The notes below the pieces were generated by a model. The model saw nothing but the letters and a program-made list of their open reading frames with translations, did not search any database and had not been told where the DNA came from. Shown here piece after piece: positions 5,967 through 61,897 of a stretch of 64,000 nt of DNA; position 1 is the first letter of the stretch, and the number at the start of each line of letters is the position of its first letter. The position numbers and the translations under genes were made by a program. The stretch covers positions 161,704-225,703 of the forward strand of contig CBFFRP010000457.1 of assembly GCA_965644295.1 (NCBI GenBank), in the 5' to 3' direction. Source of the stretch: Paraphysomonas bandaiensis (Eukaryota > Protista > Chrysophyceae).

Positions 5967-6055
5967 ACTCGACATTAGTAATGTATTGTTGGTACCGATC
6001 AGGCTTTCTTAACAAATAATTGTTAGTTATGTAGATCTTATATTTCCTATATTCC

Positions 6056-6935
6056 CGCAGACTGTGCACACCCCACAGACAACATGGCGCACATGCTTCT
6101 CACCTGCACTCACCCTGACATCATTCACATACGTGAAGATGTCCACCAAGCACACCACAATAAGCTTGACAAACTTCGCACACGCACGCTCCCCCATCCC
6201 TGGTTTTACACCGCCATAACTAAACTAGCCAAAGCCGCATGGAACCCAGCCACCCCCCAGGTTGAGCGCTACTGGACCGGCCACATTACTGCCACACAAA
6301 TGGCCGACGCATTCGGACGCCACATATCCAGCTCACTGCTCGAACATCAATTCCACGCCCTAGAAAAATCCATCGCCTCTATCCTACTCCCCCTATATGA
6401 TGGAGGGCTCCGTATGCTTCGCAATAGGGGACACAGACACCTCAACGTAGACACGGCACCGGCGACACCGGTCCCGACACACGCAAAGCCCCACCAGCCC
6501 CGACACCCGACACCAAAAGTACTCCAGCTACTCCAGGCGACATCCACCCCACGAACTACACTCTCTGCAAGAGCCCAGACCCGACAGAGGCAAGCGCAAC
6601 CACTCCGGAAACAACTTCTCCTTACTTGTAGCCGAAACCCCACCTCAACAACCAGCACCATCTCCACCACCGACTTGCACTCTCATATACAACTCGCCTC
6701 ACCCACCCCCCACATAATCCATGGCACAGGCCCGCCAGACACATTGCCCAAAGGTAGACCCCCCGACTAACCTCACTACAAGGGACGGTTGCACCATGGT
6801 GCTCGCAGCGATGCACAAGCAGTCCCGAGACGGTTGCCCGCCACTAGTAGTATATAGCAAATCTAGTTATTAGCTAGTCTATAGACATAAACTAGTTTCT
6901 GTACGCAACCGTACTCATGTAATAATCAGACTTTC
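6056..6935 (+). mobile_element. 5'-truncated non-LTR retrotransposon (LINE 3' end), no poly(A)
   Basis: 16-bp TSD ATATTTCCTATATTCC at 6040-6055 and 6936-6951. C-rich ORF to 6770 starts with a truncated zinc knuckle (C-AHPTDNMA-H-MLLT-C). Confidence 0.8.
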
Positions 6936-7059
6936 ATATTTCCTATATTCCAACGCAATGGATATTACTTCCCATTTACTTGAAGAAAATACTTAACAAG
7001 AAAATTAATTTCAATTTTTATAGTCCTAAAGTGAAAATGAAAACACTATCTATATACAG

Positions 7060-8852: not shown

Positions 8853-9058
8853 TTCATTGCATATGATCTCATATACATACACCCCTATAGTCCCATATGC
8901 GCCATACCATACTACGATACACACACACTGAGATGGAACACACCCTGCTGCTGTACCATGTACACGTCCAGCCATATACAGCGAAGTATACATCCAGAAG
9001 ACTACGAAGTGGACACCACCACCATATAGAGAACCTTTGATTGGCTGTGAAGTCTCGG

Positions 9059-9059
<1 letters not shown>

Positions 9060-9089
<30 letters not shown>

Positions 9090-9254
9090 TGTATGTATGT
9101 ATGTATGTATGTATGTATGTATGTATGTATGTATGTATGTATGTATGTATGTATGTATGTATGTATGTATGTATGTATGTATGTATGTATGTATGTATGT
9201 ATGTATGTATGTATGTATGTATGTATGTATGTATGTATGTATGTATGTATGTAT
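9060..9254 (+). repeat. (TATG)n microsatellite
   Basis: Perfect tetranucleotide array. Confidence 0.98.
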
Positions 9255-9323
9255 AGCTATGTGGTTCAGTGTATGTATGTGTGATGGGATTATAGTCATA
9301 TATATGTGTATCTATAGATCTGT

Positions 9324-11367
9324 ATGATGTCTGGAGACTCCGAACTCTACCAGTGCATAATCTGTCATGAACCTTACCGCCGAGAGGGTCGTTTATCTCC
9401 CGTAACTCTCATGTGCGGTCACTCTCTGTGTGTGGGGTGTTATGAGTCTCTTCCCTCATCATCAGCATCATCAGCAGCATCTTCCTCCTTATTATGTCCC
9501 ATATGCTCTCTTCCATGTCCCCCTCCATCCAAAAACACAACTCTATTAAAAGAGATTGCTTCAAGAGAGCTCGCATCATGTTCATTGGCTATACATACAC
9601 TGTGCAGTGAGTGTATGAGGACAACGAGCTCTGTATGCTGTGAAGAGTGCGATCGGATGCTATGCAGAAGATGTGACGATCGTCTACACAGACAGGGAGA
9701 TAGAACACAGCATCTGAGAGAGTGTACGCGAACGGAAGAGACGGATATGTGTGCCAGTCATATGCATCCGCTGACTCAGTACTGCAAGACGTGTGAGCGA
9801 TCTGTATGTGATGATTGTGCCTCGACTGGTGAACATGCTGCTCACGAGACGGGTGATCTAAAAAGCGTTGCTGCTAAAATAGAGAAGCGCATGTCCAACT
9901 ATAGGAAAGTACTGGAGCAGATATGCGCCGAAACGAGCTCGATGTCCTCTAATATTGAGCAATGTTTAGGCAATGCAGGTGTTGGTGATGAGAAAAATTC
10001 AGAATCATCATCTTTACGTAACGAGTGGAAGCAAACAGCAAGGAATTCTATCAACCAAACTTTTGAAAAGCTACATGCTGCTTTGCACAAACGACGCCAG
10101 GAACTGCTAACCATGGTGGATAACGTATACGAGGAGAAAAAGCTGCATTTGCTCGGACAAAATGCAAGCGCCAATAATCTCCATCGGAGTGCACACGAAT
10201 TGTTAGAAAAAATCGAAGAGTTTCCGCCGGATCGGGAGGCTTCTTTGGTTAGTTTGTACGGGGAACTACAAGAACAACTTGATGATTTAAACGAGGTCGA
10301 TATACATACTATGATAGGCCCCGTAAATGACCTACGAGTCCACACTTCTTTTGATACCAAAGACCTCGATGTGCTGTTTAGCATAGTTCATACCCTGGGC
10401 ACTGTTGGTGAGAAAGGAGAAGCTGGAAGGGATGTATCACAAAATAAAACTACCAGATCACGGTCTCCCGCCCCCTCTTCTTCGATAGGATCGAAGGGTG
10501 ACAATCGACCTGTCGGAAATATTGAGGAATCCGCTCCCCTGTCATTTGATGACTTATACGTAGGTATGGTTGTCGTGTACAGTTTATCTGGACTTATATG
10601 ATATGTGTGGAGAATGTTGAGTCCGTATGATTTATGTTTGCTTTTTTAGGGATGAGGGTGGACGCTCTCGATACTGTGAATAGATGGGCAGAAGCGGAGG
10701 TAAACGCCAACGTTCACGTCATTTTTGGTATATAATATCCTCTGCTACTACTAGTGCGGTGCATGACAACTACTCGCATACGATTACGAGATCTGACTGT
10801 GTACAATGTATTTCACTCTCCCTGTAACTGTGAACTGCCGTATTGTTCAGGTTTTAGAACTCGATGCGGGTGAGCGGGAAGTGCTTGTGTCGTACGTTTA
10901 TTGGCCCTCTGAGTGGAATGAATGGTTGCCTGTAAGAAGCGATGTAATTGCTCCTTTGAAAACGCACACCCTCTGCGCTGGGCGTGAGATTTGCGTGGGC
11001 CAGAGGGTAGAAGTATGTAATGGTGGAAGCGAATGGAGGGAAGCTTTCGTAACTAATGTCAATGGCTATCAGGTTTGAAGCAACTTCGCGTTACAGTCTG
11101 CATTTGCGTTGTTTTCTTGAGTTATGAGTGCTGCACTGCATGTATTTTAATGCGTGCACCTTATCATGATTGTAGATAATTAGGTACATGTAGGTGGAAG
11201 TCCTGTATGAAGACGACAAGCAGAAGGAGCGGAGCTTAACTGTGGATACTCGTATGGATCGTATCCGACAGTATGGTATTGCGGCTCAACCAAAGAAAAA
11301 AAGAGCAAGTACGTCGTCGTCAAAGTCGAATAATAGTAAGCAAGGCAAAAAGAAAGCACGTGCGTGA
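9324..11367 (+). CDS. RING / B-box / coiled-coil (TRIM-like) protein with C-terminal Tudor/MBT-like repeats
   Basis: CxxC..CGH..C RING, two B-boxes, coiled coil. Spliced exons GMRVDALDTVNRWAEAE, YVYWPSEWNEWL. Confidence 0.85.
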
Positions 11368-11573: not shown

Positions 11574-11621
11574 AAAATGTACGAATTTTCGATACCTTCC
11601 CTCGATACCCTTATGTGGTAG

Positions 11622-11753
11622 TGGATGTCCTATTATTAGCAATAGGCGTTTAAAAGTCAGAACTGGCTATATATGCGGCTCACGCTAGTTTCCCGGAGAA
11701 CTATCTCCGGTACAGATTGTACATATCCCTAGACCCGACTTTGTTGAGGGCTA
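11622..11753 (-). mobile_element. Minimal (132 bp) non-autonomous retroposon, family R
   Basis: 11-bp TSD TTATGTGGTAG (11611-11621, 11754-11764); family head joined directly to family tail. Confidence 0.75.
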
Positions 11754-11907
11754 TTATGTGGTAGGGGGTAGGGGTACATTGTTGTAGCGTTGTAAAATTT
11801 GGGGATTTACTGTTTTGAGTTAATCTAGAATCTAGTACAACACCATTCCCTAAGCTTTTGTGTAGGATTGATTAGAAACAATACTTTGATTTGTAATCGT
11901 TTTTATA

Positions 11908-13113
11908 TATTGAATGTCTGATTATTAAGAAGCGCAAGCTTGTGCGTTGCCGCGACCAACCTAACAACTCGCGCGACACTATGCATAACATGACTCTCAT
12001 CTAGTTACTATTGCATGCACCGACAAGTGCTCAACTATACAACACGATTTAGTTAGCTACATGGGCATACGACGAGTTGCGTGTTTAAGCCGGATCATAC
12101 GCTCCTGCCCAATCTACTTGTCCTGACACAAACAACTTGCGGTCGGTGTCTTCGGCATATGTCTCCTGTATATGCGGCAGATCTTTAGGGCCCTCTTCAA
12201 GGTGGTGTTCACAGCAGCAGGTAGTCTGGAAGGGAGAATAAAGTAGCTCTAGCGCCGGGTCCTCCCACGGTCACGAAGCGGTCTCACTGGTGCAATTTTG
12301 CACACTGACGCATGAAACAGACATCTACCAAAATCTGTTACAAATTCAAGCTGACTCCGATGTCTTCCCTCCATTGTGTGCACTCGTCCAGCACATGCAT
12401 CCACCTTGCACTCTTCTCCCGAGTGACTTACACTAGTAGGAAACCGTGCACCTTCCCCGCTCGGATGAAAACCTACTAAGCAAGAATAACATAAAAGCAC
12501 CACAAATGTACCTGACACTGCTTGGAGAACAGTGCCAGAGCCTTGATATAATCTCAATGACCTGGGTCAGAGGAGAAACCAAGACTAGGCAGTAGACGTG
12601 TGAGAAGACATAACAGGTCCAATCACATCATTGTCATTGCCATGCATCCATGAGGAAAGTTTGACGCATTACCTCGGTCATTGGCCACACAGATACCGAA
12701 TAATGTGAACTCATACTCAGCATCAATCACTCAAAGCAAACGCAGGGAGCAAGCAGAATGTTGATATACCTGACATCTGCTGACTTCAGGTTTTTTGAGT
12801 TCTCAAGGTGAACATCCCGGATGCTTAACTTCAGCAGGCAGCCCAATACCCCGGTTACCCTTCTGGTGGGCCCTGTCCCGGATGCCCTTGAGGTGGGCCC
12901 ATTCCCGGATGCCTGTTTATTCGTCAGGGCCCAAAGACGTCTACACAAGTGACACTTATTAGTGTCCCTTGTACCACACAAGCATTTGGCTATGAGTGGG
13001 CAGAACATATATCTGCTGACTATGTTTGCGGCTCACGTTAGTTTCCCGGAGAAATATCTCCGGTACTTATCCCCCAGAACACCACGAAAGGTGCGAGTCC
13101 GACTTTGTTGAGG
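11908..13113 (-). mobile_element. Long (1.2 kb) non-autonomous retroposon, family R
   Basis: 15-bp TSD GTAATCGTTTTTATA (11893-11907, 13114-13128); no TIRs; 3' end taataatcagacattca. Confidence 0.8.
13028..13113 (-). ncRNA. Candidate HDV-like ribozyme fold at retroposon 5' end
   Basis: P2 CGG(A)CTCGC/GTGAGCCG, P3 ACC/GGT, L3 TTTCGT, P4 CCGGAGA/TCTCCGG, J4/2 CTAA. P1 and P1.1 are imperfect. Confidence 0.5.
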
Positions 13114-13479
13114 GTAATCGTTTTTATAATTCTAATCAGGAGCATCTCTATTTCCTTTAATAGCGAGTAACAAGCTAAATTTCTATACATTCTAAATATT
13201 ATAAACATTAGGCTTTTAGCATCATGAAGATATGATATGATACGTAAAAACTCTATTATCCTACGAGAACTGCTTGTGTGTTGCCGCAAACACCAAGGTA
13301 CGAATTCTCTCTATATTATTCATAGGAGTGTGTGTAGGGGACGTTTTACACGTATAGCATGACAAGTGAAAGCAGTGATCTACAGCCACACTGAAACTCT
13401 TGAGGCTACACATACATATTTACGGCAGGCACCAGAGGGGAAGCAGCAAATACCCTTTTGAGTACGTTCTTTACAGTCA

Positions 13480-14218
13480 AGTAATGAGTGTCTTATTATT
13501 AGCAACAACAGCAACTGCTTAACTATTATGCTTAGCTATGATATTATCCTACTATTTAACGTCACCGCAAGCACCAAGAGGTGCAACCGCTTTCGCTTCA
13601 TCACTCAGAGCGAACGCAGTGATCAAGCAGAATATATAGTAAATTTGATATACTACATGACATACATCTCTTGTAGCACCTATTGCTAAAATATAGCATG
13701 CATGGAAATGAGAGTGTAATGACGGACATAGAAAAAATACTCACACACATACAGATGGATGTATATGAATGTACCACTTTGACATATTTAATTCTTTCTA
13801 TCTGTTGCTCGAGAATAATTAGTACCAACTAACGCAGCTTATAATGTTCATATATGCGTATAGGATGTGGTGTGTATGCTATAATGATGATTGTAAGTGC
13901 ATAATATATATATTTTATATAAGTAAAACATACATAATATAGCTAATATAGCAGTCAGTAATTATATGATGTGAGTAATGTTGTGATGAGCATGATGATG
14001 ATAATAGTATAACATCATAATAAATATATATATATATAAAGTAGTGATGATGTTGTGTAAAATACATGTACGAGTATGTAAGTAGTAAAATGATGATATA
14101 TATTATTGCAGTGTCCCTTGTACCACACAAGCATTTGGCTACGGGTGGGCAGAACATTCTCGGGTTACTATATATAAGTAGCTCACTTTAATTTCCGGAG
14201 AAATACCTCAGGTACTTA
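13480..14218 (-). mobile_element. Interrupted family R copy (tail 13480-13640, head 14108-14218)
   Basis: Both pieces match family R; AT-rich sequence lies between; no TSD found. Confidence 0.6.
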
Positions 14219-14289
14219 TAATTGCATTCCTTGGGATGTACTGGTGCTTAATATTATATTATATATTATGCTAGATATAGAACAAAGCT

Positions 14290-20949: not shown

Positions 20950-21330
20950 CATGTGAATAGTGTTCGCTCCCAGTAGACCATAATACACAACGTCTGGGCC
21001 GAAATTTTATATGTCAACTCCTCCTTCCTTATGGCCACGAAAAATACCGTTGGAATATACGTATTTACCATATTTAGAGGCCGTTCATGATTTCTATGTT
21101 AGATACACCGAGAGAAACAGTGCTTATGATCATACTGACTTTCTTTATATTCTCATTAGGGATGTAGAAGCTAAAATTTTAAATTACTATTGAAGATAGT
21201 AATACCGACCCTGGTTGTTAGCTGTGAGTAATGCGAATGATGATTTTAAACAGCGGTGGTACATCGAAGATGATAGTCAAGCATCAAGCAGGCAATTTAT
21301 TAGATCTATTCGATGCAGCGTTGCAAGTTA
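20950..21330 (+). repeat. Duplicate of the CK1-like gene stop codon and 3' flank (27692-28072)
   Basis: Near-identical ~380-bp segments starting catgtgaatag. Confidence 0.9.
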
Positions 21331-25911: not shown

Positions 25912-27698
25912 ATGAGTATGAGGTGGATGTTGTTAGTCTTGTTATTGTTGGTGTTCTCAGTGGTGTTGTGTGATGATGTGCCGGAGTGGACGGGTGGGGT
26001 CGTTAACGGGCAGGTGAGCCACCAACATACACATGCATGTGATGGCTATGCATGCATTCACTGCATCTATCTCACCGTATCTATCTCACTGCATCTATCT
26101 CACCGTATCTATCTCACTGCATCTATCTCACCGTATCTATCTCACTGCATCTATCTCACCGTATCTATCTCACTGCATCTATCTCACCGTATCTATCTCA
26201 CTGTATCTATCTCACTGCATCTATCTCACTGTATCTATCTCACTGCATCTATCTCACTGTATCTATCTCACTGCATCTATCTCACTGTATGTAGTTTGAG
26301 GTCGAGAGTTTCTTGGGATCCGGCTCATATGGATGGGTATACCGGGGGCGGGATGTCCGTACCGGTCATCTGGTCGCCTTAAAGGCGGAGTCTGTTAATG
26401 CCACCAAGTCGAAGCTGCCATATGAATGCGACATACTGGAGCGCATTAGAAACATAAGTACGTGCATGCATCTCATGATGGAGACAACAGTGTCATGTGC
26501 AGTGCACTGAGTGACTGTGCTGCAGGTGATCACATAGTGAAGCTGCACTGGTGTGGATATGCGGGCCTCCATAATGAGTATAGAGTGTTAGTAACAGATC
26601 TCTACGGCAAAAGCTTAGAGAGTGTAGAAAACGATGATCACATGAAGGATATCAAATATTTGAACCGCGTGAAAAATGTGGGCCGACAGATGGTCTCGAC
26701 ATTGGAGATACTGCATGATGCCGGTATGTGAATGAGGTTATTTTCTTCTTAAGCACGCACAGTATATACACGCAGTAGGCTTATGTGAAATGCAAAATTG
26801 GTGTATATGTTCGTGGTGATGATATAATGTGCAGGTGTGATTCACGTTGACATCAAGCCAGCCAATATAATGGAAGACCGTGCAAATAAGAACAAGTACA
26901 TACTCATCGATTTTAACCTAGCACGGTTGTACATTCGCGATGGCAGGCATATTTTATACAATGATGGGGGGCGGCGGTCAGGCACACCTAGATACATGTC
27001 CTTCAATAGCATGTTACGCACAGGTACTGAAAAAGTACATGAGTAGGATTTGGGGATGATATGTGTATATATAATCGAGCTCCTGTTATATGATACAGTT
27101 ATGGTGACACTGCAATCCTGATGATGTATCCCAATATTTTTCAGAGCTATCACGGAGAGACGACTTAGAATCTCTGGCCTACGTACTGATATCACTATTA
27201 AAACCACTCCCTTGGTCAGGAATAAGCGCCAATAACACGCGCGAGAAAAATCTGAGGCGCATACAGGCAAGGATGAAAGAATCCATTGACACTCTCTGCG
27301 AGGGACTACCAGGTATGCAATGCTTTTGATATATGCCTTCCATAGCAAGGAGAGTATTGACAGCACAAGTAGTAGCATTACGTGGTATTTGGAGGAACCG
27401 TGATAATATTAGTGGAGTACTGTACAGCATACGTGGATTTTATTTTTTGTATATTGTAGAAAGTATTCTGTACATTCACTGTTGTTTTCAGTATTGTGTA
27501 TTGTTGGTTTAATAAAGTTTAGAATATGGGTATAGCATACTGTGTACTATATATATGCCCAGGGTAGGTGTGAGCAAAACTGATATGTTTATTATCATTA
27601 TAGGAGAATTTAATGCTTTCATGAGACATACGAAATCTTTGGGATTCTATGAGCGGCCGAATTACGACTTACTGAGAAGCTTATTGGACAGCATGTGA
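25912..27698 (+). CDS. Casein kinase 1-like kinase with N-terminal signal peptide, 6 exons
   Basis: MRWMLLVLLLLVFSVVLC; LGSGSYGWVY, VALKAE, HVDIKPAN, DFNLA, GTPRYMS, TPLPWSG; last exon EFNAFMRHTKSLGFYERPNY. Confidence 0.85.
26059..26290 (+). repeat. 14-bp minisatellite (cacYgYatctatct)n within intron 1
   Basis: About 16 tandem units between the GT at 26014 and the AG at 26294. Confidence 0.95.
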
Positions 27699-28918
27699 AT
27701 AGTGTTCGCTCCCAGCAGACCTTAATACACAACGTCTGGGCCGAAATTTTATATGTGAGCTCCTCCTTCCTTATGGCCATGAAAAATACCGTTGGAATAA
27801 ACGTATTTATCATTTTTAGAGGCCGTCCATGATTTTTATGTTAGAAACACCGAGAGAAACAGTGCTTATGATCATACTGACTTTCTTTATATTCTCATTA
27901 GGGATGTAGAAGCTAAAATTTTAAATTACTATTGAAGATAGTAATACCGGCCCTGGTTGTCAGCTGTGAGTAATGCGAGTGACGATGTACAACAGCGGTG
28001 GTACATCCAATATGACAGTCAAGCATCAAGCAGGCAATTTATCAGATCTATTCGATCCAGCGTTGCAAGTTATATTCATGAGTGAAATTTCTTGAGTCGA
28101 TATACAGTCAGCTCACAATCTAATATGTCGATGTCGAAGACATCTCAGATTTAAACATAAAATCATATAAAGTCACGACTCATTTATGTAGTACTTTTAG
28201 ATTATATTCATTCAATTATTGCTATTATCTACAGTATTATTAATAGCTAAATACACTGTATATCTATAATTATGACTGCAAAGGCTTAAGAATCGTACAT
28301 TTGGATCTATTATTGGACCTAGTCAATTTAGTGAAATTTCCTAGTCACACCTTAAATAGTGTAAAAAATATAGCAATTAAATATATAAGCTTTACAATGA
28401 CTCCATACATGTTTAATGTATTTTTCTATCCAACAAGTATCAAGCATTCAATACAGTAATAAATTATTTATTACTTTGACTAGGTTTTTACCCCAAAGTC
28501 TGTGACAAGTTAATTCAACCAATTTGACTACTCCCTTTTGTACACTATACTTCATACACCAGGGCTACGTATCAATTAATTTATGCATGTTGTAGTTAAT
28601 TATAATTGCAATTATTTCTTGTTGTCTCAATTTCAATTATTGCAACTATTTAATATAGCTACCTCATGATTTCATATTCTGGAGGCGACGACACACACAC
28701 TTCTGTATGTATCGACGGTTCATGCGTAAAAACATAAGTAGCTCTAACTACCGAGGATTCATACTCTGGCGCAAACCCGTCATAACAATCTTAGCTCTAC
28801 TGAACAACCTTTCAACCTTATTGGTTGTGGCATGCAAGTGCTTCATGTGTTGCGGTAGCGAGTGTGCTGGTTAAGACATTCTTATATGGCATATACGATA
28901 TTCAGTATACCTCATTTT

Positions 28919-39869: not shown

Positions 39870-40391
39870 TTATGCATAATCGTCAAGAGCTGGGTCGTAT
39901 ACATTGTAGTTAGCAGCTCTTTCCTTGAATTTGGCACCATAGACCGGTAGAATCACGAGAGTATTTAGAAACAGAAAAGAAAGTGTATAAATAAGATACC
40001 CAACAGCCATAAATGGAAGAGAAAATATAAAGAACAGCAATGCGCAAACCATCCCCATTGCCGTCTGCTTGTTGCTGTCTGTCCCAAGATTCCATAAACC
40101 CTTCCCGACAAACATAACGCCCACATGAACACAGTGACACACATAGTGACCCACCACAAGAAACACGAAGACGGTAACAAACACTGTAGCTAAGATTGCA
40201 TAGCCCAGAGAGTTCCATACTGTGCATAGTGCACCCGGCAGAGAGCCCTGCCGCTCATCAACGACACACGCCTGCTGCTCCTCGTCAGATAACACCTCAA
40301 TCCTCTCCGCAACAACAGCATCCCCCACAGGATCAGCCCTTGGAACAACTGTATGCTCACTTTGACTATCCTTAGCGACACCTTCACTCAT
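39870..40391 (-). CDS. Small multi-pass membrane protein
   Basis: MSEGVAKD start at 40391; hydrophobic segments. Confidence 0.6.
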   Translation of the reverse strand: MSEGVAKDSQSEHTVVPRADPVGDAVVAERIEVLSDEEQQACVVDERQGSLPGALCTVWNSLGYAILATVFVTVFVFLVVGHYVCHCVHVGVMFVGKGLWNLGTDSNKQTAMGMVCALLFFIFSLPFMAVGYLIYTLSFLFLNTLVILPVYGAKFKERAANYNVYDPALDDYA

Positions 40392-40422
40392 CCTCACCAC
40401 TGAAGAACTTTGCTCATACTTC

Positions 40423-40567
40423 CATACACACATACATACATACATACATACATACATACATACATACATACTTCCATACACACATACATACATACATACA
40501 TACATACATACATACATACATACATACATACATACATACATACATACATACATACATACATACACAC

Positions 40568-40598
<31 letters not shown>

Positions 40599-41036
40599 CA
40601 TACATACATACATACATACATACATACATACATACATACATACATACATACATACATACATACATACATACATACATACTTCCATACACACATACATACA
40701 TACATACATACATACATACATACATACATACATACATACATACATACATACATACATACATACATACATACATACATACATACATACATACATACATACA
40801 TACATACATACATACATACATACATACATACATACATACATACATACATACATACATACATACATACATACATACATACATACATACATACATACATACA
40901 TACATACATACATACATACATACATACATACATACATACATACATACATACATACATACATACATACATACATACATACATACATACATACTGTACATAC
41001 ATACATACATACATACATACCTACATACATGTATGT
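40423..41036 (-). repeat. (TATG)n microsatellite, ~600 bp
   Basis: (CATA)n on + with recurring variant units. Confidence 0.98.
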
Positions 41037-41848
41037 ACGGAAAATGGCGTTTTCTGATATTTTTTCTGGTTTTATAGTTGTATAGTGTTGCTTTTCTCTA
41101 ATATCCGGATATTTCGTACTGATACAAGCCTATAAAAGTAGAGATTTACAGGCATATCTTACTGTATAGCTATAGCTGGGCACCTTCAGAGGTGCTTGAG
41201 AGGCCCTCGAGTCAAGTGAGTCTCCTGGCCCACACTCATCTGACAATGATACTGACATACGAGTCATACCGTGTGTGTTGTATACTCGTAAACATCATCA
41301 GCACAGCTGCACTCATTGTCTCATAGGCACACAGCTGCACTGCTGCGCCTCGTATGATCGTTGACATCTAGAAGAGTATCGCAGGCGACTCAATGCATGG
41401 AAGTCCATCGCTGGTTGCTATCAGAGTGCTACCTACAGAGATGTCAGTGTGGAGCTATAGGCGAAGAGACAAGACACAGTCGTGTATACCGCAGCAGTGT
41501 TAGTTCTATCCAGTCGGCCTTAGCTTTCACTCAACGATTGAAGTGATTGATGCTGAGTTTGGCTGTTTGCGAGCACTGAAAGCATTTGAATGATGACCGT
41601 TAATGGGGGAATACAGAAGTGTTTAACAGTATTATGCGAACTAACGTCATGATAGTAATCAAGTAGTAGTGTGGCTGAGATATACTGACCGTATAAGGTC
41701 GTGATGTATCTCAGATTATGTCAAAAAGATTCGTAGTTGCAGTAGCATAGATTTGGCGATTGACAATAAATAAATGGTAAGTGATATTGATCATGATTTT
41801 ACTAGTTTATAATTCAAGCATTGAGTGTGTATATTACGCTTTTATAGT

Positions 41849-42868
41849 TGCATTCATGCACCAACAAGTGCGCAACTATACAACACGATTTAGTTAGCTA
41901 CAGGGCCATAGAAACGAGTTGCGTGTTTAGTCGGATCATACGCTCCTGCCCAATCTACTAGTCCTGACATAAACAACTTGCGGTCCGTGCTCTTCGGCAG
42001 ATCTTTAGGGCCCTTCAAGACGATGTTCACAGAAGCAGGTAGTCTGAAAGGGAGAGTAGCGTAGCTCTAGCGCTGGGTCCTCCCAACGTCACGAGGCGGC
42101 CTCACAGGTGCATTTTTTCTCACACTGACGCTTGAAACAGACGTCTACCAAAATCCAAACTGGTTCCTAAACGTCTTCCCTCCATTATTGCGTGCATTCG
42201 TCCAGCACATGCACCCACCTTGCACTCTTCTGCCGAGCGACTTCGCTAGTAGGAAGCCCTAGCTTTCTCCTCTCGGATGAAAGCCTATTAAGACGAAGTA
42301 TCATCACAACACCACCAATGTACCTATCACTGCTTGGAGAACAGTGCCAGAGCCTTTTTATAATTTCAATGACCTGGGTCAGGAGAAACCAACTAAGCAG
42401 TAGACTTGTAGTAGACATAATAGTAGGTCTAATCACATTGCCGAGGAAAGTTTGACGCATTACCTCTGTTATTGACCACAGAGATGCCAAGTACTTTAAA
42501 CATATATTCGGCATCAATCACACTTAAAGCAAACGTAGTGAGCAAGCAGAATGTTGGTATACCTGTAATCTGTTGACTCAAGATTTTCGAGTCCTCAGGG
42601 TGATCTCATCCCGGATACTTGTCTTCAGTAGGCAGACCAACCCCCGGATGACTTTGAGGTGGGCCTATTCCCGGATGCCTGTTTATTCGTCAGGGCTCTA
42701 CACAAGTGACATTTATTTGTGCCCCTTGCACCACACAAGAATTTGGCCATAAGTGGGGGGAAATTATCTGCTGAGTGTGTATATGCGGCTCACGTTGGGT
42801 ATTCATCTCTGAAATGTCTCGGGTATTTATCCCCAAGAACACCACGAAAAGGTGTGAGTCCGACGTCG
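41849..42868 (-). mobile_element. Long family R retroposon copy lacking the tail motif
   Basis: Colinear with 12010-13105; 8-bp flanking repeat TTTATAGT. Confidence 0.75.
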
Positions 42869-43296
42869 TTTATAGTGATAACAGAATGAGCAAAAGTCAA
42901 TATTATACAAGAGCTATTAATGAACTACGTTGAACTACAGCATTTTGTTAAGCTAAACTTAACACAAGGATGTGAATAGAAAAATCAGAATAGTTCTGCG
43001 AATATTACTAATAATAGAGCTTGGGTATTCGACATCTATTCATAAGAAATACTGTTTTCGCAGTCAGACAGTTTTGCTAGGTCTGAGCTCTAAAGTGAGG
43101 AAACCGTTATACTCTGACGATAATTTTTGCTTCAGGATCATGGCATATAAAAGTACACGCAGTACAACATATACATGAATTAGTCGTCTAAAAACAGAGA
43201 AAATCCTATATATCATTTGTGATGTCACTTTTGTCATATTCGGATAATGAAACTTAAGTAACTGAACTTGAACTCACACACAGTAAAAAAAACAGA

Positions 43297-44240
43297 GATA
43301 TAGGGAACAATATAATAGCAATACCATTGTTAGGTAGCGTTCCGTCAATATTATTTTAAACCGATCCAACAATATTGCTATGTATGTATCATTACTCCCA
43401 CCTTTTCGTAGTGTTCTGGGGGATAAGTACAGGAGATATTTCTCCAGGAAAAACTAACGTGAGCCGCATGTGTAGTCAGCAGATATTGTTCTGCCCACTC
43501 ATAGCCAAATGCTTGTGTGGTACAAGGAACACTAATAAATGTCACTTTTGTAAACGTCTTTGGGCCTTATTGACGAATACACAGGCATCCGGGAATGGGC
43601 CCACCTCAAGGATTTTGTGTGATAGAGCGAAAGTGGTTGCATCTTGGTGCTTGGTGCTTGCGGTGCCGTACAAGCAGCTTTCGTAGAGCTAAATAGCAGA
43701 ATATCAGAGTTAAGCATTGACTCTTAAACGCCTACTGCTAATAATAAGGCATTCACTACTGTATCATTAATCAGTAGGTAAACCCCTCCGTTGATTCCAT
43801 TTTTAGTATACTAGTCAGTAAGATCACACATACATGATAACCAAACCCACAACTCCTTAGCTAATAACTATTTTCTTCCTACTCATTCTCTGAGTCATCG
43901 TCGGTGCCGTCAACATTACCATATATATTCATTCACAAACTTAATTGAAATATGCTTGCATCCGGCCACAACTGTCGATTAGATTTCAGAAACAACAGCA
44001 TATATATTAAGTGTAGTAGGAAGTAGGATGCATAAGTTTACGTAGCGCTGATATAATATATTAGCTGCGGTGAACAGGCGTTCACATGTATTTGAAGTAC
44101 ATACTACATGACTCGTGCACCACGCATACATCTCGTTGTGTGTATGCACCTGTACTTAAATATTTCAAGTTTTCGTTTCTTAATTTTTTGAGCTACCGAA
44201 GAAATTTTTCCGCGTAGCCAACATCAGCCATAAATTGCAA
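43297..44240 (-). mobile_element. Degenerate copy of the 21427 hAT element, interrupted by family R
   Basis: tagggaacaatat end; 43830-44230 matches 21640-21990. Confidence 0.75.
43395..43759 (+). mobile_element. Short (365 bp) family R retroposon
   Basis: 10-bp TSD TGTATCATTA (43385-43394, 43760-43769). Confidence 0.8.
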
Positions 44241-44617: not shown

Positions 44618-47600
44618 CTACCACCAGCTTTGCTGATTGCGCTCCTTCAAAAGCTTAGCCATATTTGCAAATTCTTTTGATGCATCTGCTAATTTCGCAC
44701 TCTTATCACTGAGCTGTTCCAATTTTTCTCCACGTTCCTGTAGTTTCAGCTTAGCATCTGCCAAAGTTTCCATGGTCGCAGTCGAGGAAGATATAGTAGA
44801 TTCTGATTTCGACACCTCGGACGATTTACCACTTGTGCCTTTAAACAATGCATCTCTCGAAGCAGAAATTTTATCCTTATCTCGGGAGTCTGGTGATATA
44901 ATATCGCCGTGCTGAACAGGTGGTAGAGGCATATTTCCTTTGCCAGACATGAAGGCTTCCGCTCGAGCGATATCGATTCGATGTGAAACGACGTTGTAAC
45001 ATCCATCGCATACCCTTACCTGAAAACAGTTTATTTAGTACACTGATAACTACCGCAATGAAGCGTGGCGGGCAACACACTGTTACCTAGCAGCGCTAAT
45101 ACAATAAATTTCATCACATCACTGTTTACTCACCGCCTGCTTGCTAATGGTAACCCTCTTTTTTGAGCATTCATCGCAGCACAATGAGTCACACAATCGA
45201 CAATGGTGTTGTCTACGGAAAATGGTAAACGTCGCACGGCACAGGGTACAGGGAGGAGGTTTTCCAGCTTCAACACATTGTGCAGCGACTGTTGTGGCAT
45301 CACTGTGGTGGTCGAACTCCTTTAAGCTACACGTAAAACATTAAAACAACTGCGAGAGGAGAAATCAAAAATACCTCAATTTAATGTCATCTCCATTAAG
45401 AAGTCCTTTTTTGCTCCACATCGATATCCCTTCATTGATAACAAGCGTTGCATCCTCTGACCTAAGCTCAGATGGTGGACCTTCCTCCGTTCGTCCACCG
45501 TGAGACATGAGCAAAAGTAAACTTGACTGCAAGCCATCTTTCCACCGGGTTACATGTTCATTCATAATATCAATAGGACGGCGCCCCCGGATGTCTGGAA
45601 TGTTAGGAAAAGCTCCATGCTCCAGTAGAACACGGAGAGTAGATATGCTGTCAGCTGGGTTGGTCTGCTCGAGGTCCTCTTCTTGCCCACCACTTCTGAT
45701 CCACGCCTGGAGTTCATCGTCATTTTCATCATTTCCGGCCACCACCCCGTCACCTTCCCCGCCCCTGCTCTGAAGAATTTTTTGGCCCTCTCCAATTGCC
45801 CGCTTCAGTGGCATGCTGCTGCATGCAAAGTGTAAAGGTGTCCAACCGTCCTCGTCGCAATGGATGTTTACATCAGCCACTGATGCGCTGGAATTCGTCG
45901 TGTCTGACTTCGAGAGTAGGGTCTCGATCGCCTGATGCTGCCAGCTTGCACTAAGGTAGTGCAAAACGCTAAGTCCTTCTCTATCCTTGAAATTTGGGTC
46001 CGCGCCTGACTCAATCAAAAACTCGATCGACTTGCTGAGAGCCTGTATGTCGGTATGCCCTTTCACATCACGACCTTCTACGCACGCCAGATATAGTGGA
46101 GTACGGCCTTTATCATCCAAAACATCGACGTTAAACACGTGTGTACATAACATACCCAGTGCTTCGCTGTCTAATTGCAGAGCAGCCCAGTGAAGTGGTG
46201 TCAGACCGCGCCTATCAGGGATAGTTACATCGGCACTGCTTTCATGCAATACTCGGGTGATACTCGTCAGTCGGAGTATGTTGGCATAGTGCAGTGGAGT
46301 GTATCCCTCCTCATCCTGAGTCTCCATATCTTCGAACTCATTTTCACCAGCCAGACATGCCTCCAAAAGAGCGTTGACTTTTCGCACATCTCTCGAGAGT
46401 ACCGCAGCATGCATCGTTCCTATGAGGTACTGGTGTCTCCATCCTATCACTCTCCTGCGCTCTTCCTCATCCACACTCTCACACAAACACTCATACACTG
46501 CCCTCACCCACTCTTCCCTAGTCGTCACGTCTTCACAGATCACTACAAGTGATCCACCTGGATACAATACTTCAAACACCGACTTCGGATTAGTAGTTGT
46601 GCTGTCGATGAGATCCGACTCCACTCGAATATTTATCTTACAGGTGGCGAGGTCGACAAGTGTCTCCACTGCGAACTTATCTCCTTGACTGGCCGTCACC
46701 AGCAACACATCTGTCAAAAGAAATAAATATTTCTTGTTCTGCACATTCCAGAGAGCACGCTTTCCAGCTACTGCCACGGCCCCGTGCTTAACTATTCGTC
46801 TCCCGTCCTTTACTATGATGCTTGTAGAGAGAGCAGTGGCCCGGTCTGCAGCATTTTGTTTCCCTTTCATGATGCGTGTTGCCAAATTTTTTTGCTGCTT
46901 CGGGGGGATACTTTCAGGTCGAGATTCTTTTTCTTTAAAGACAAGGCGGGCCGCCAATTTGCGCAGAGAGATCATATCGGCCGACTCCTCCTCTAGGGAA
47001 AGGGTGGAGTCTGCCTCAGATGCAGCAACCGGAGATATGGGCGGCTCATTTACGGGAACTTCACCATTATCAGGAGATTCACTACCAGTTTCTTGTTTAG
47101 CTGGAATCGGTGTGTTGGCTAACGATTTAACTGATGACTGACTCACAGGAATAGGCTTAACCAGTGACGCAGTTCCAGTGTCCCCTTTATCTACTAATGT
47201 AGGGCTGTCGCTAACTCCAGACGTCGTGGGGGACGAAGTCTGACCAGGTGATACGGCACCAGCTATATTTCCACTCGTTGCTGAAGGTGGTGCAGGAGAA
47301 CTGGACGCTGAAGATGACCCCGATATCGATGGAGGACATGTGTATCGTCGAAAGATCATTTGCAGAGGCCGTTCTGCGTTTTTTATATATTTTACAGTCT
47401 CAGTCCACTGCTCCTTATCTACATGTGTGTCGCCAATGACTCTTTCCCCAACACCCCAGAGTTCATCACCACTATGTACCCCTCCTTCATCCGCTTGAGT
47501 ACCTACTTCCACTTCATGTACATATATAACCCCATCCGCACGGCGTCGAAGTGTCATACCAAGTGGGCCTTCGTCGAACTCTACCACCGACAGGTTCGGC

Positions 47601-48154
47601 CCCGAAGGAGGAGTTGGTAACGCAACACTACTTGGAGGAGATGAGTATGATCGATTAGATTTTGTAACTGCGACAGGCCCCGCATCATCACAGTGCCTCT
47701 CGTCTGAGTGTTGCCCAGTTATCACTTGCAATATTCGAAACATTACTGTCTCTCCGTGACGTGTATCGGACAGGACTAACTTCATACTCCCATCTGAATT
47801 CGTATGAAGTCTTAAGTATTTCATGTTATCACCATGACCAACCACCAACTCAAAGGCACTCATCTCATATGAGTATACGCGTAGCTCAAAGGGTTCCTCT
47901 ATAGAGAAAGGAGCCCATATGAGATCACCGCAACTGTTAGTTTGAAGAGAGACAGCCGTATCCTCATCATCTCTACCCACTAACAACACAGGCACCCCCT
48001 CAGACACCCCTTCACCACACAGCAACAGCACTAAGAACTGCTGCCCCTCTCCCTCCCCCTCCCGCTCAACCACACTCACGACACCGCCACACTCACATGG
48101 AAGGTACAGATGCCGGTCTACAATCTGCACCAGAACCCTTGATCTTGAATCCAT
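44618..48154 (-). CDS. PDZ + PH + ankyrin + FYVE-like + C-terminal R-SNARE motif protein
   Basis: GPLGMTL (PDZ); YLFLLTDVLL..REEWVRAV (PH); GYTPLH/GLTPLH/GWTPLH; FTIFRRQHHCRLC; LQERGEKLEQLSDKS. Confidence 0.8.
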
Positions 48155-48214
48155 GCTGCTGTATATATAAGAAATCAGATCACTGAGCACACCTGAATCC
48201 CCCTCATTAAACAA

Positions 48215-48447
48215 CACACACATACATACATACATACATACATACATACATACATACATACATACATACATACATACATACATACATACATACATACATA
48301 CATACATACATACATACATACATACATACATACATACATACACTACATACATACATACATACATACACTACATACATACATACATACATACATACATACA
48401 TACATACATACATACATACATACATACATACATACATACATACACAC

Positions 48448-48478
<31 letters not shown>

Positions 48479-48547
48479 CATACATACATACATACATACA
48501 TACATACATACATACATACATACATACATACATACATACATACACAC

Positions 48548-48578
<31 letters not shown>

Positions 48579-48679
48579 CATACATACATACATACATACA
48601 TACATACATACATACATACATACATACATACATACATACATACACACATACATACATACATACATACATACATACACAC

Positions 48680-48710
<31 letters not shown>

Positions 48711-48874
48711 CATACATACATACATACATACATACATACATACATACATACATACATACATACATACATACATACATACATACATACATACATACATACA
48801 TACATACATACATACATACATACATACATACATACATACATACATACATACATACATACATACATACATACATA
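48215..48874 (-). repeat. (TATG)n microsatellite, ~660 bp
   Basis: (CATA)n on +. Confidence 0.98.
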
Positions 48875-49095
48875 CCAGTATATTATCATATATTCCTCAA
48901 AAACTAGAAAAACCCGGATATCTTACCCTTTCCTGTCTCCTCCGGCATGAAAACCCCTCTTTTCTACAGCCTGTAGAGTGCACCACCTCAATCTTGGTGT
49001 GGTCTTGAGATGGCTGCTAGTGTGTGTATATATACATACATATTCTTCTCTATGTTCCAGTGAGGCGTAGCATCAACAGCAACCTCAGTGCTGAT

Positions 49096-55115: not shown

Positions 55116-58100
55116 TGTTAGAAATAGACATTTTTAGTAATAAGACCTTCGTTAACACTTATATGGAATATTATATAATTATGAGTGATACCATACTTCA
55201 TTCATTGACGTTCACCAACTCTTTCTATCTCTACTACACCAACCATTTCTAGTACGATCTTATATCGTCACTATCTTGTACAGTCAGTATATTTCAGTTT
55301 TATCACTACAATGGCTATCATATTATTGGTTCTCATACTACAGCTAGCTACTACTGTATTCTTTGAGTAACGGATATAATTCTAATATCTTGGAAACTAC
55401 AGCTTTTAATTGCTCACAAACAGCAAAACTCAACACTCCCTCTCAATTCAAAGCTGTAAAACATGGCATAACTGACGGATACGCAACCACCGAAACCGTA
55501 TAGGACAAACCGGTGGACGTATGGCTCCGACGTTTCAGCTAGCCTCTCCGTAGACAACACGTTTATGAGCCTCTGTTTCGTTTGTATGAATTCTCTCTGA
55601 TGACATCCACAGATGACTTCTGATCTTCTCCTAGACATCTCTTTCTATGCTTCTCGTATATAACGCCACACAAAGATTTCGTAAATATGTCTGCAGTCTG
55701 GTTATCAGTTCCAACGTGATACAATATCGCAGTGTTAAAACGTCCTTCTGGATCTACATGTTCACGCACCCAGTGGTATTTGATTTCAATGTGTTTTGAT
55801 CTTTTGTGGAACACTGGATTTAATGCTAGATCACGAGCACTCTGGCTATCTAAAAAGAATGGAGTGGGTTCGTACAGTCGAAGTCCCAATTCGGCCAACA
55901 CCCCCCGAAGCCACACCAGTTCTTGCATGCCAGCGTACATAGCTTGGTACTCACTCTGCATTGAAGACGTAGACACAGTAACTTGTAAGATTGATTGCCA
56001 GGTGAGTGGTCCACCTGCTGCAAACACAATGTATCCAGTTGTCGACCTTCGTGACACAGTATCGCCTGCCCAGTCAGCATCTGTGAAAATATGCATGTCA
56101 AAGCTCTTACCACTGAACCGAATACCTTTCCGCACAGTACCCCTGATGTATTGTAACAAATAAGTCATCAACTTGCATGTAGCCTTTGTTGGTTTCGAAG
56201 CATATCGTGACAATAGGCCAACAGCATACGCAATATCTGGACGCGTATTCATTGATAGATATAGCATGGCACCTAGTAAGCTACGATAGGGATAATTGTC
56301 GACTCCCTCTTCCTCCTGAGATGAGTTCTCACTATCAGTGCAATTAATCCTGTCCATGGCATCTACAGGTAGTGGGGATTTGCGAACTTTGTTTGAAGGT
56401 CCAAGGAATGCTGCATATTTGGTGAGAATTTTTTCAGCGTATGTCGATTGGTCAAGTTGAATATAATTCTTGGTCCTTGTAACTCGAACGTTGAGAAAAT
56501 GCTCTAATTCTCCCATGTCTGACATGTCAAATCTTTCACAAAACCGTTTCTTGATTTCTGTCAAAATAGTCAGATCCGCACAAGCGATTACTATATCATC
56601 AACGTATATGGTTAAGTACACACGATGACCTTTGTACATCATATAATATAGGTATGGTTCTAAAATACAGGGTTTGAATCCCAAAGACTTTATAAATCCA
56701 TGTATGGTCTTCCACCATGAACGTGGAGAACTCCGAAGGCCATATAGTGAGCGATATAGTTTGAAACAGTGTCCTGGTGGCAACTGAAAATCGGGAGGAG
56801 GGTCCATGTACACGTCTCCTTCGATTTTAGCATAACAGAATGCATTCGACACGTCAAGTTGATGGATGTGCATACTAAACATGAAAGCAAGTGCAATGAT
56901 TAGTCTAACCGTAATCGATTTCACCACAGGAGCAAATGTATTTTCGACGTCTATACCTGTCCTTTGACCATATCCCAGAGCGACCAGACGAGCTTTATGC
57001 TTTTTTATTGATCCATCTTTATTGTATTTTCGTTTGAACACATATCTGGACTTTAGAGGTCTAACACCAGGTGGCGTCTCAACGACATTAAACACTTCCC
57101 GCTTGAATAATGCATTCCGTTCTAATCGTCTAGCTTCCTTCCAATTTGAAGCTTCAGGACATGTCAATGACTCTTCATACGTCTCAGGCTCTCTATAAGT
57201 AGACGAGTTAGACATAAGTGCGCAATCACTCTCATCACACAAGTTAACAATCTCCTCGTCATGGAGAAGGTTTACCTCACCCAGGGTGGACACATTAGTC
57301 AACACCCTTCGGGTTCGCGTACGTTTACCACTGGTCTCCCTTGACTCAGCATGTACAGTACCACTATTCTCACTGGGCACACAAGAAGGTACATTCTCAA
57401 AGACACGATTCGCGCTGACCCCACTCGGTACAGCACCCGCACTACTCTCCGGCAAAGTACGAAGGGACATTCTCTTCCCTGGAATCTCATCCGCCGTAGA
57501 CTTATTGGGCGTGTCACCCGAAGCCGGCGTAGATGACGATCCACCTCTCTTGTCGTCACAAGAACGAGGTTTTGAGTACAGCCTGCGGTTATAGTCACCA
57601 GTCAACTCGGCAATATCACGTACGTGAATAGGGACTTTTTCTTCTATCTGCTCTTTCCCAGCAGTTACTAGCGCCCTAAACGCCACAATTAGTCCTTTTC
57701 GCACCACAACTCTCGTAGTCTTGAAGAGAAACCCGTCGTCCACATGATACGAACCAATCAGATGTTTAAACTCTTCAACTGATCGATCTAATGGGTCAGT
57801 TTTGACTAAGGCCTCTTCAAGCTCTGCATAGTACTCCTTATCTCTTGGAGGTATACTTTCATCATACAGAACATGTACTGATACGACTTCTTTGTCACCA
57901 AGCCACACACGGGATCCCTTTTTCGTATTGGATAGACCTATGAAATACCCAGTCTGTGACTTCTCCTGCCAATCCTTTCGACGATCACCTTTGGGAATAA
58001 GCACATAAGCCTTGCACCCCCAGCGTCGAAATCTCGATAAGTCAGGGACTGAACCTCCTGGAACGCACTCCATTGGAGACATCCAACCTCGATATGTACG

Positions 58101-60317
58101 TGTAGGCATTCGTCGAACGATCATGCATGCATATACATAAGCATCCCACCAAAAAATTACGGGTAATCCTGAGTCCATTAACAGAGCCAGAGTCATTTCT
58201 CCCAATGTTCGATTCCTACGCTCAGATACACCATTCATCTCAGGGCTGTCTGTGGAGCTCCAAGTGATGCTAGTTCCAAACTTGCTCATTAAGTATTGCT
58301 GAATGGACTTGTCGATCAACTCAGCCCCCCCATCCGAATGGTACTGTATCAACCGGTGTGAACCGGGATATGTAGGGAGTTTACGCTCAACCCAGTCCTT
58401 CACGCAACTCAACACCTCATTCGCAGACCGTGTCTCCAACGGATATTCCCAAAACTCCTTGGTGGCTATATCTGATAATGTCAGAACATATTTATATCCT
58501 TGTCTGGATGGGCAATTGAAATATACAGCAATGTCCACAGAAACCTTCTCAAGGAACTCTGTAGCTTGCAGTTCGTCATCTCTCTTTGCGGTGAATGATT
58601 TCCTTGTCATCTTTGATTTTGCGCAAGCCTTACAAATACCTTTCATTTTTCGTAAACTCTTCTTGCTGAGATGTCGTCGGGTTAATCCGCTCCCGGTAAA
58701 AAGTCTGTGTTTAAATGCTTCAATCAGCTTATGTTTGCTGACGTGTCCACAGCGCTTGTGTAACATCTCTAACGGATCTTCATGCACCTTGTCGGACAAA
58801 TATACTTCCTCCGGCATTGTCAAATTTGGAAGATCAAGTATTTCCTGTAAGTTTACGTAAGGCATTCCGTTGCTTGAGTAGGTTGCCTCCAATACAGTCT
58901 CCCCAGTATCAAGTCGCACAACAGTGGGGTTGTTCAACAACTGCAATCCATACCCGTGAGAACGGAGTATTCCTCCAGAGCAGATATTCTTGACTGATCC
59001 AGGGCAGATCTTGATGTCAGTCCAATCGCCAAAGCCTCCAGTTTCCTCATAGTGTAAACTTGATCCAGCTCTGGTTGTCTGGATATCTCCATCCTCCATC
59101 CACATACATAACAGCCATCTGATTTTTTCTTCTCGTTGTTGTCTCTGCGACTCTCAGATCGATTCCTAGCGACTCGACTCTTTCCCTGCCTTCTTAATTT
59201 CGCAATCTTAAGATCTCTCTTCTTCTTCCAGCACGATTTCTGTGAGTGGCCCCGTTTGCCACATTTGGGATAGCTGCACACCTCATTTTCATCAGCAGTG
59301 GAATTCATGTTTACTTCGTCGGTGCCTTCTTTCGGGACACCTTTTGCCTGATCGTATCTCCTGCATATGGTGATCATATCAATAAAGGTTATGTCACCTT
59401 GTAGGTAGAGATTGGTGTACAGTTGCTCCAAATCGCTTCGTGTTTCGAGGGCAGTCTGTAACTTCGTTTTTTTAGCGATGTCAGTGGGTGGTTCCCCCAA
59501 CTCGGACATTTTTTGACAGATGCCGTTTAGTCGATCGATTGCTGCGCACACGAGTTCCCCCGGTAGAATTTTGAATCCTGCAAACTTCTTATTCAATTCA
59601 ACTAATTCATATTGGATTTCCCCTCTAAACCGAACAATTAACCTAGAGATGAGTTCACTCGCTAACTGCTCTTTATCAGGATGGTCCTGCGGGAGCATAT
59701 CCTTTTCCCGGAAGTACTGATCCACGATCTCAAGGGCTTCAGCGACTGGTTGAACAGCTTCAAATATCGAACTGATGCACGTGTCTTTCCTCTCCAGCCA
59801 CTTGTCCAGATCCTCCTTGTACTTATTTCGGACTGTCACTGGCGCATTATTTGCTGGTCTTACTGGACGGTCCTCTAGACCCAGATGGTTCCTGTTCTTC
59901 CTCATCAACCACACTTTCAGATTCTTTGACCAATTCACTACACCGAACTGATCAAATTTGGGAAGAAGTTTCCACTCCGAACTACTGTCTGCTACCATGT
60001 TAGAAATAGACATTTTTAGTAATAAGACCTTCGTTAACACTTATATGGAATATTATATAATTATGAGTGATACCATACTTCATTCATTGACGTTCACCAA
60101 CTCTTTCTATCTCTACTACACCAACCATTTCTAGTACGATCTTATATCGTCACTATCTTGTACAGTCAGTATATTTCAGTTTTATCACTACAATGGCTAT
60201 CATATTATTGGTTCTCATACTACAGCTAGCTACTACTGTATTCTTTGAGTAACGGATATAATTCTAATATCTTGGAAACTACAGCTTTTAATTGCTCACA
60301 AACAGCAAAACTCAACA
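55116..60317 (-). mobile_element. Ty1/copia LTR retrotransposon, recent, with gag/protease deletion
   Basis: 320-bp TG..CA LTRs (55116-55435, 59998-60317), identical by eye; TSD AAGGT; PBS TGGTAGCAGA; PPT; INT-RT(YVDD)-RNaseH(DADWAG) order. Confidence 0.97.
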
Positions 60318-61339: not shown

Positions 61340-61467
61340 GGTGATCACACTTATCACTGACCAGGTTAAACGAGTTGGAATAATGTCACACTCTGCATAT
61401 GAATGAAGCAGATGCTGGATTGGGACAATCAGCACGCGCACCTACCACACCACCACCACATGCTCTC

Positions 61468-61804: not shown

Positions 61805-61897
61805 AGGATAGGATCGTGTCTTGTTATGTGGGTATTTGTATAATTGAACGTGTGTCTTTGTTAAAAATTAAAGCTCCTTGTCTGTTCTAATTGAAGA

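Follow-up and report, generated by a model that had tools for sequence, protein, structure and literature searches.

Stringent SINE/LINE pairs, such as UnaSINE1 and UnaL2 of the eel, are joined by a 3′ tail that stems from the LINE and closes with a conserved motif; they have no need of poly(A), produce target site duplications (TSDs) of variable length and generate 5′-truncated copies. Classical SINEs carry a Pol III head derived from tRNA, 7SL or 5S. Two further groups of LINE-dependent elements are built on a structured 5′ end. The R2 SIDEs and R2/R1 hybrid SIDEs of Drosophila are non-coding and consist of such an end and a LINE 3′ UTR (Eickbush and Eickbush, 2012; PMC3414825), the hybrids having the TSD typical of the LINE that provides their 3′ end (PMC3414825). 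The trypanosomatid NARTc, RIME and SIDER elements, headed by Pr77 (PMC3185411, PMC4035085, PMC1874656) are abundant non-autonomous partners of an APE-RT LINE, as is the family that we describe here, family R. Its overall plan, in which a structured 5′ head is followed by a body that may be missing and by a tail from a LINE 3′ UTR, is already known from R2 SIDEs, from NARTc/RIME/SIDER and from stringent SINE/LINE pairs.

Family R was recognized in a 64-kb stretch of AT-leaning DNA (~41% G+C), the whole of which is called the window below. An initial annotation had described five related elements there as internally deleted, LINE-dependent retroposons. All five are present, with flanking repeats of 15, 11, 10 and 8 bp at four of them, but their orientation and the standing of the smallest copy had to be revised.

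Family R in the window and in the genome

The reference copy, R1206, is a full-length member of a 1.2-kb subfamily. It measures 1206 bp and lies on the minus strand at 11908-13113/13114, where a genome search returns its own 100% match and at least 39 copies at 96-99%. Its sense 5′ end, CCCTCAAC..., is at 13114 and its sense 3′ end, ...AATAATCAGACATTCAATA, at 11908. The 15-bp TSD gtaatcgtttttata (plus strand) occupies 11893-11907 and 13114-13128, the last base of the TSD overlapping the first C of the element. Two parts of R1206 recur throughout this work, both on the minus strand: a conserved, structured 5′ head of ~90 nt (13025-13114), and a LINE-derived 3′ terminal motif (11908-11935) in which 15 of 16 nt are as in the LINE terminus.

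The repeat finder and BLAST link the window copies to one another. As the initial annotation proposed, shorter and longer forms have both ends in common and differ in the interior. R365 (365 bp, plus strand, 43395-43759), delimited by alignments and its TSD, joins the 5′ module to a LINE-3′-UTR-like tail; it lacks the first ~16 nt of the head and is flanked by the 10-bp TSD tgtatcatta (plus strand) at 43385-43394 and 43760-43769. A 1020-bp copy on the minus strand (41849-42868) aligns with R1206 at 77% identity and is an older relative of it. Its 5′ end is short of ~4 nt, its 3′ end stops ~90 nt early and so has no LINE-type terminus, and it has the 8-bp flanking repeat tttatagt (plus strand) at 41841-41848 and 42869-42876. 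A split, degraded copy on the minus strand (13480-14219) retains the 5′ module at 14103-14219 and the tail from 13480 to ~13640, separated by an AT-rich stretch; no TSD was found at its flanks. We also found a sixth, small R-type tail fragment on the minus strand at 13250-13299, a LINE-3′-UTR-like block that is 78% identical over 50 nt to positions 337-386 of R512, the ~510-bp sister family of R1206.

The smallest copy, R132 (132 bp, minus strand, 11622-11753), was identified by its TSD and by BLAST. Internal deletion has left it with a tail and only part of the head, from which P2/P3 are missing; it has 3 additional nt at the 5′ junction and carries the 11-bp TSD ttatgtggtag (plus strand) at 11611-11621 and 11754-11764. 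The initial annotation counted it as a form of the family, but a genome-wide search found this form only once; it is a one-off and not a propagating subfamily.

Other features of the window include a young Copia-type LTR retrotransposon at 55116-60297, whose 300-nt direct repeats (55116-55415 and 59998-60297) are 100% identical and whose minus-strand ORFs encode gag (Retrotran_gag_2), integrase (rve), SH3_retrovirus and RVT_2 domains. An older element may have left its LTRs in a second pair of 300-nt direct repeats (20950-21249 and 27692-27991), which are 94% identical and separated by 6.7 kb. Arrays of (GTAT)n/(ATAC)n microsatellites, hundreds of bases long, at 8972-9378, 40257-41060, 48344-48877 and 61380-61842 give rise to spurious long ORFs and low-complexity protein matches. 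Host-like uninterrupted ORFs at 9324-10601 and 45365-48364 encode a RING and B-box (TRIM-like) protein and a 999-aa protein with a PH domain and ankyrin repeats, respectively. A host transporter reaches at most 56% identity to environmental proteins and ~37% to those of early-diverging fungi, its best named relatives, and a protein atlas gave a vague indication of animals.

Across the 62.5-Mb assembly, R1206 has at least 40 copies, 96-100% identical and on different contigs, from a search that gave 2,622 first-look candidates. R512 likewise has at least 40 copies at 95-98%, with a complete one at L071:359-871. With 2 mismatches at most allowed, the conserved first 24 nt of the head match the genome 1,169 times, and the reversed control gives 0 matches. 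The repeat family that had been claimed from five copies thus extends, by genome-wide BLAST and pattern search, to more than 1,100 copies, far above chance. Mean pairwise identity among 28 independent R1206 copies is 99.2%, and the amplification was therefore very recent. Contigs spanning most of R1206 are found in poly(A) and total metatranscriptomes of marine samples, in which strand and ends are invisible and DNA carry-over is possible.

The junctions of R1206 were surveyed by locating each fetched copy and comparing both of its flanks. Exact direct repeats of 11-18 bp are present at the junctions of 27 of the 29 fetched copies, on different contigs; one of the two exceptions lies in a tandemly duplicated block and the other is broken at one end. 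Given the small number of offsets permitted, a repeat of this length would arise by chance in about 1e-5 of copies. The TSDs begin mostly with TA or AT. In the sense orientation the copies end in ...TTCAAT followed by 0-4 additional A/T bases, and every TSD-bearing copy begins with the identical 5′ end. The two ends of family R are unrelated to each other and show neither terminal inverted repeats (TIRs) nor poly(A). The longest ORFs of R1206 have no Pfam match, and a tblastn comparison with 150 LINE-like proteins revealed no similarity. Partial, near-identical copies all keep the 3′ end: six span sense ~91-1206 and one (L066) spans 281-1206.

Variable TSDs, the absence of TIRs and poly(A), and the lack of coding capacity argue for a non-autonomous element inserted by target-primed reverse transcription. 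This mode of insertion had been put forward from the window copies, and it gains from the TSD lengths, the 5′-truncated copies and the terminus shared with a LINE. The TSD tabulation that the initial annotation had suggested, applied to the 29 fetched copies, likewise gives variable lengths, flanking repeats above chance and no TIRs. Judged from its sequence, family R is very probably a LINE-mobilized, non-coding, non-autonomous non-LTR retroposon, SINE-like in the broad sense.

Several individual loci deserve mention. Five of the six partial R1206 copies end within 5 nt of sense ~91 (C423:238822, C370:208956, C144:53773, C292:141252 and C297:22653, all in G000), a pile-up that could represent a reverse-transcriptase stop or a headless subfamily. 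Three R1206 copies stand in tandem with repeated flanks at G000:C421:68996-73369 (L005, L011 and L012, starting at 68996, 70389 and 72164); they go back not to three insertions but to tandem duplication of a segment that contains the element. At G000:C123:494879-499084 (L018), an R1206 copy with a 16-bp TSD sits inside an ORF of a different APE-RT LINE family. R copies are often nested in the heads and bodies of other R copies (L026, L029), and in L066 LINE-X, the LINE discussed below, abuts R.

The structured 5′ head

The HDV-like fold is a nested double pseudoknot with a 6-7-bp P1 at the cleavage site, P1′ immediately after P3/L3, 5 bp or more in P2 and a cytosine in J4/2 (PMC3774820). In nested minimum free energy folding, a long helix closes the R head and encloses two hairpins, one of CACC/GGUG with 7 nt in its loop and the other of 7 bp. 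The 5′ CCCUCA left free can pair with UGGGGG between the hairpins, and this additional helix produces the HDV-like double-pseudoknot order P1-P2-P3-L3-P3′-P1′-P4-J4/2-P2′, with C-N-A-A just before P2′. A P2 of 8 bp, a P3 of 3-4 bp, a P4 of 7 bp and a J4/2 ending ...ACUAA fit such a fold. P1 attains 6 bp only if P3′ is followed by a 3-nt spacer; alternatively it covers 8 positions, 2 of them mismatched. J1/4 measures 7 nt versus 0-2 in R2. When the double-pseudoknot drawing was applied to 13 diverged heads, 89% of cells were paired, compared with 36-52% for slid controls. Covariation was borderline, with 3 compensatory pairs equalled by 25 of 500 shuffles, and the source copies are decaying ones that were also used to derive the structure. 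By thermodynamic folding, neither the tails nor the head are more stable than shuffles (z -1.6 to +0.9).

The strongest alternative is that the head is no ribozyme, and that it defines the 5′ end only as an internal promoter, or as a protein-binding or second-strand-priming structure. We consider this only slightly less probable than its opposite. The head matches no Rfam family at the gathering score or at E <= 10, the models being narrow and unable to score pseudoknots, and P1 is imperfect. The head is also the most variable part among R1206 copies: in the 28 copies, variability per column is 1.75% over sense nt 1-100 and about 0.3% in the remainder of the element, a ~5-fold difference. Changes in T-run length, CpG decay or error-prone copying of a structured end are possible sources of this variability. 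In addition, the similar Pr77 acts as a Pol II promoter whose downstream element is CGTG (PMC4748587); CGTG also stands at +30 of the R head. Against a purely non-catalytic role stand the fit of the HDV helix order, the C-N-A-A before P2′ and a P3/L3 close to that of L1TcRz. The stop of five of the six truncated R1206 copies at the 3′ edge of the head is likewise expected of, and fits, a compact structure that blocks reverse transcriptase. The identical CCCTCAAC start of TSD-bearing copies lends indirect support to the predicted self-cleavage 5′ of nt 1. The R132 copy lacks P3 and is single in the genome, and therefore provides no evidence against a ribozyme. From the modelled fold, we regard ribozyme function of the head as about as likely as not; the head may equally be a promoter, by itself or in addition.

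Pr77, the head of L1Tc (as a ribozyme, L1TcRz), is the closest described counterpart of the R head. Both start with CCCT, have an identical P3 (CACC/GGUG) and a 7-nt L3 ending in CGU, and share ...AGUA before P4, GAA(R)CUAA before P2′ and CGTG near +25 to +30. The L1Tc ribozyme starts at C1 as well, cleaving just before this base, and its P1.1 is a single pair (PMC3185411); a C at +1 of the R head is therefore no obstacle to a ribozyme. R differs from Pr77-headed elements in its marine host, whose proteins are close to those of no named genome, in having no poly(A) tail and in the 3-nt spacer between P3′ and P1′. In global alignment with the full 77-nt Pr77 (oligo R77, PMC1874656) the similarity of the R head is borderline (z 2.0-3.1), with 26-252 of 5000 shuffles as good depending on the scoring; with a partial Pr77 rebuilt from primers it is not significant. 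The R head might unite promoter and HDV-like ribozyme in the manner of L1Tc/Pr77 and be a true homologue of this trypanosomatid ingi/L1Tc hallmark, heading more than 1,100 retroposons in a marine eukaryote; this is a tentative reading that we hold to be rather unlikely.

The probable LINE partner, the sense strand and the class of element

A candidate partner is present in the window. A 5′-truncated copy of the element that we call LINE-X lies on the plus strand at 6058-6935, with a remnant of a C-terminal ORF, a 3′ UTR of 166 nt and a 16-bp TSD at 6042-6057 and 6936-6951. The genome holds at least 40 copies of LINE-X at 93-99%, with stop-free frames of 1722-2479 aa that span APE and RT matches upstream of the 3′ end, and its relatives in public data have Exo_endo_phos (APE) and RVT_1 (RT) domains. 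The C-terminal 614 aa gave no match in sequence and profile searches of Pfam and PDB; the region may be RNase H-like, as conserved D/E/D/H/D columns and a CCHC motif suggest. Through the closest protein fragment a single metagenome contig of 1.1 kb was retrieved, and neither a search for related loci nor one of JGI metagenome contigs with a pattern of the head gave a match. At G000:C426:354309-359220 and elsewhere, the APE match of LINE copies lies within exceptionally long frames free of stops, 2,479 to 3,731 aa in length.

In the coding orientation, the terminus of LINE-X reads ...GTAATAATCAGACTTTC, with a short AT extension behind it. The TSDs of its truncated copies measure 16, 13, 13 and 14 bp, the 3′ ends of these copies read CTTTC(AT)n, and ATA follows the LINE-X end in all 12 copies read. 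LINE-X insertions are of the same kind as those of family R, with a short A/T extension in place of poly(A) and targets that begin with AT/TA. The sense terminus of R1206, ...CTTAATAATCAGACATTCAATA, is identical to the LINE-X terminus at 15 of 16 positions, a score equalled by 2 of 2000 shuffles. The 166 nt of the LINE-X 3′ UTR align over their full length, in the same order, with ~190 nt in the 3′ part of R512 (BLAST E = 1.7e-6), including one block with ~36 of 40 positions identical by our count in the alignment. The 3′-UTR block is also found in R365 and in the split copy. The terminal motif occurs five times in the 64-kb window, once at a LINE end and four times at R ends, and always at the 3′ end of an element. 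The LINE dependence asserted in the initial annotation is thereby borne out in one concrete respect, a terminus common to family R and a resident endonuclease-type LINE. The ~800 nt of the R1206 body have no match in the last 2.4 kb of LINE-X, and on contigs C1-C123 no head was found upstream of a LINE copy on the same strand, though many of the copies there are truncated.

The driver could instead be another LINE family of this genome, or several, with LINE-X only a relative of the true partner. Several related APE-LINE families do exist in the genome, there are 3-5 differences from LINE-X at the ends of R365, R132 and the split copy (…AATAATAAGGCATTCACTAC and similar), and the 1020-bp copy has an 8-bp flanking repeat yet no LINE-type terminus. 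At the very terminus, however, R1206 and R512 match LINE-X best, the age of R (95-99%) is like that of LINE-X (93-99%), and TSD length and target preference coincide, all of which makes a different driver improbable. The agreement in age, TSD length, target preference and terminus leads us to infer that LINE-X or a very close relative drives family R.

The same LINE settles the orientation of family R, which the initial annotation had reversed. Read in reverse complement, its "head" (TGAATGTCTGATTATTA...) becomes the LINE-derived 3′ tail, as the match to the LINE terminus shows, and its "tail" (a hairpin and ...TTGTTGAGGG) becomes the fixed 5′ head and not a 3′ tail. The LINE-X terminus being the reverse complement of that former "head", the sense strand of 11908-13114 is therefore the minus strand. 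The partial R1206 copies keep the LINE-type end and lose the other, which likewise identifies the former "head" as the 3′ tail and the former "tail" as the 5′ end. If the sense strand were instead the plus strand of the window, the former "tail" would be a 3′ stem-loop recognized by a LINE. Such a reading can draw on the hairpin CCGGAGA-N4-TCTCCGG near that end, which resembles the 3′ stem-loops of stringent LINEs, and on a single variable base beside ...ATTGAA, which is readable as an untemplated 5′ addition. It is very unlikely, since LINE-X in its coding orientation ends with the reverse complement of the former "head", the whole LINE 3′ UTR in R512 has that same orientation, the near-identical partial copies lose the GTTGAGGG end and not the opposite one, and among all loci read no LINE ends in ...GTTGAGGG.

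With the minus strand as the sense strand, the remaining alternative is a class of element other than a LINE-mobilized one. DNA transposons (MITEs), Helitrons, solo LTRs or Penelope-type retrozymes have in their favor nothing specific, just the general possibility that applies to short non-coding repeats, and their probability is close to nil: there are no TIRs and TSD length varies from 11 to 18 bp, against a MITE; TSDs are present and the 5′-TC/CTRR-3′ signature is not, against a Helitron; TG...CA ends and a fixed TSD of 4-6 bp are missing, against a solo LTR; and no hammerhead was found in copies that are dispersed and not tandem, against a retrozyme.

Proposed mechanism and place among LINE-dependent retroposons

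Family R elements are composed of three parts. The first is an invariant, highly structured 5′ head of ~90 nt that makes up, with a conserved 5′ module, ~320 nt; the first ~320 nt are 75-95% shared between subfamilies with wholly different bodies. The second is a variable body, absent in the ~510-bp R512 and represented in R1206 by ~800 nt of unrelated non-coding sequence. The third is a 3′ tail that, we propose, was copied from the 3′ UTR of the resident endonuclease-type LINE-X. The LINE-X reverse transcriptase would recognize the common 3′ UTR and terminus ("stringent" recognition), and LINE-X would nick AT-rich targets and copy the R RNA by target-primed reverse transcription. With less confidence, we suggest that the head may fix the exact 5′ end through HDV-like self-cleavage of read-through transcripts, through an internal promoter, or both, as Pr77 does in L1Tc.

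Family R resembles the R2 SIDEs of Drosophila in having a precise 5′ terminus from a structured 5′ end and a LINE 3′ UTR for target-primed reverse transcription; its 3′ end, like that which characterizes SIDEs, is a LINE 3′ UTR, as seen in the R512 tail. The Drosophila SIDEs, however, are rare, specific to rDNA and proven to derive from the LINE's own two ends, whereas family R is dispersed in more than 1,100 copies. The ~800-nt unrelated body of R1206 is also unlike Drosophila SIDEs. Internal deletion of a LINE, as put forward in the initial annotation, would make family R a strict SIDE (as defined in PMC3414825); the family may equally be chimeric, with a LINE tail joined to a head of independent origin. 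With stringent SINE/LINE pairs it shares the LINE-type 3′ tail and terminal motif, the variable TSDs and the 5′ truncation. Unlike classical SINEs, it has no tRNA or Rfam head and, at 0.5-1.2 kb, is longer than most SINEs. ARAGORN detected no tRNA in the 64-kb window, and with Rfam also empty a head derived from tRNA, 7SL or 5S is not supported.

Family R provides a clean natural example of stringent 3′-UTR recognition by a LINE without poly(A). Should its head self-cleave, the combination of an HDV-like ribozyme head and a LINE-derived tail that marks R2 SIDEs and NARTc/RIME/SIDER would reach into another branch of eukaryotes. Were the head truly homologous to Pr77, the module would be far older, or more mobile between lineages, than its "trypanosomatid-only" status suggests. 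Finally, family R makes up an estimated ~1% of the 62.5-Mb genome (1,169 heads of 0.5-1.2 kb each), and its recent activity, together with insertions within other repeats and beside genes, means that it matters for the annotation and masking of this genome.
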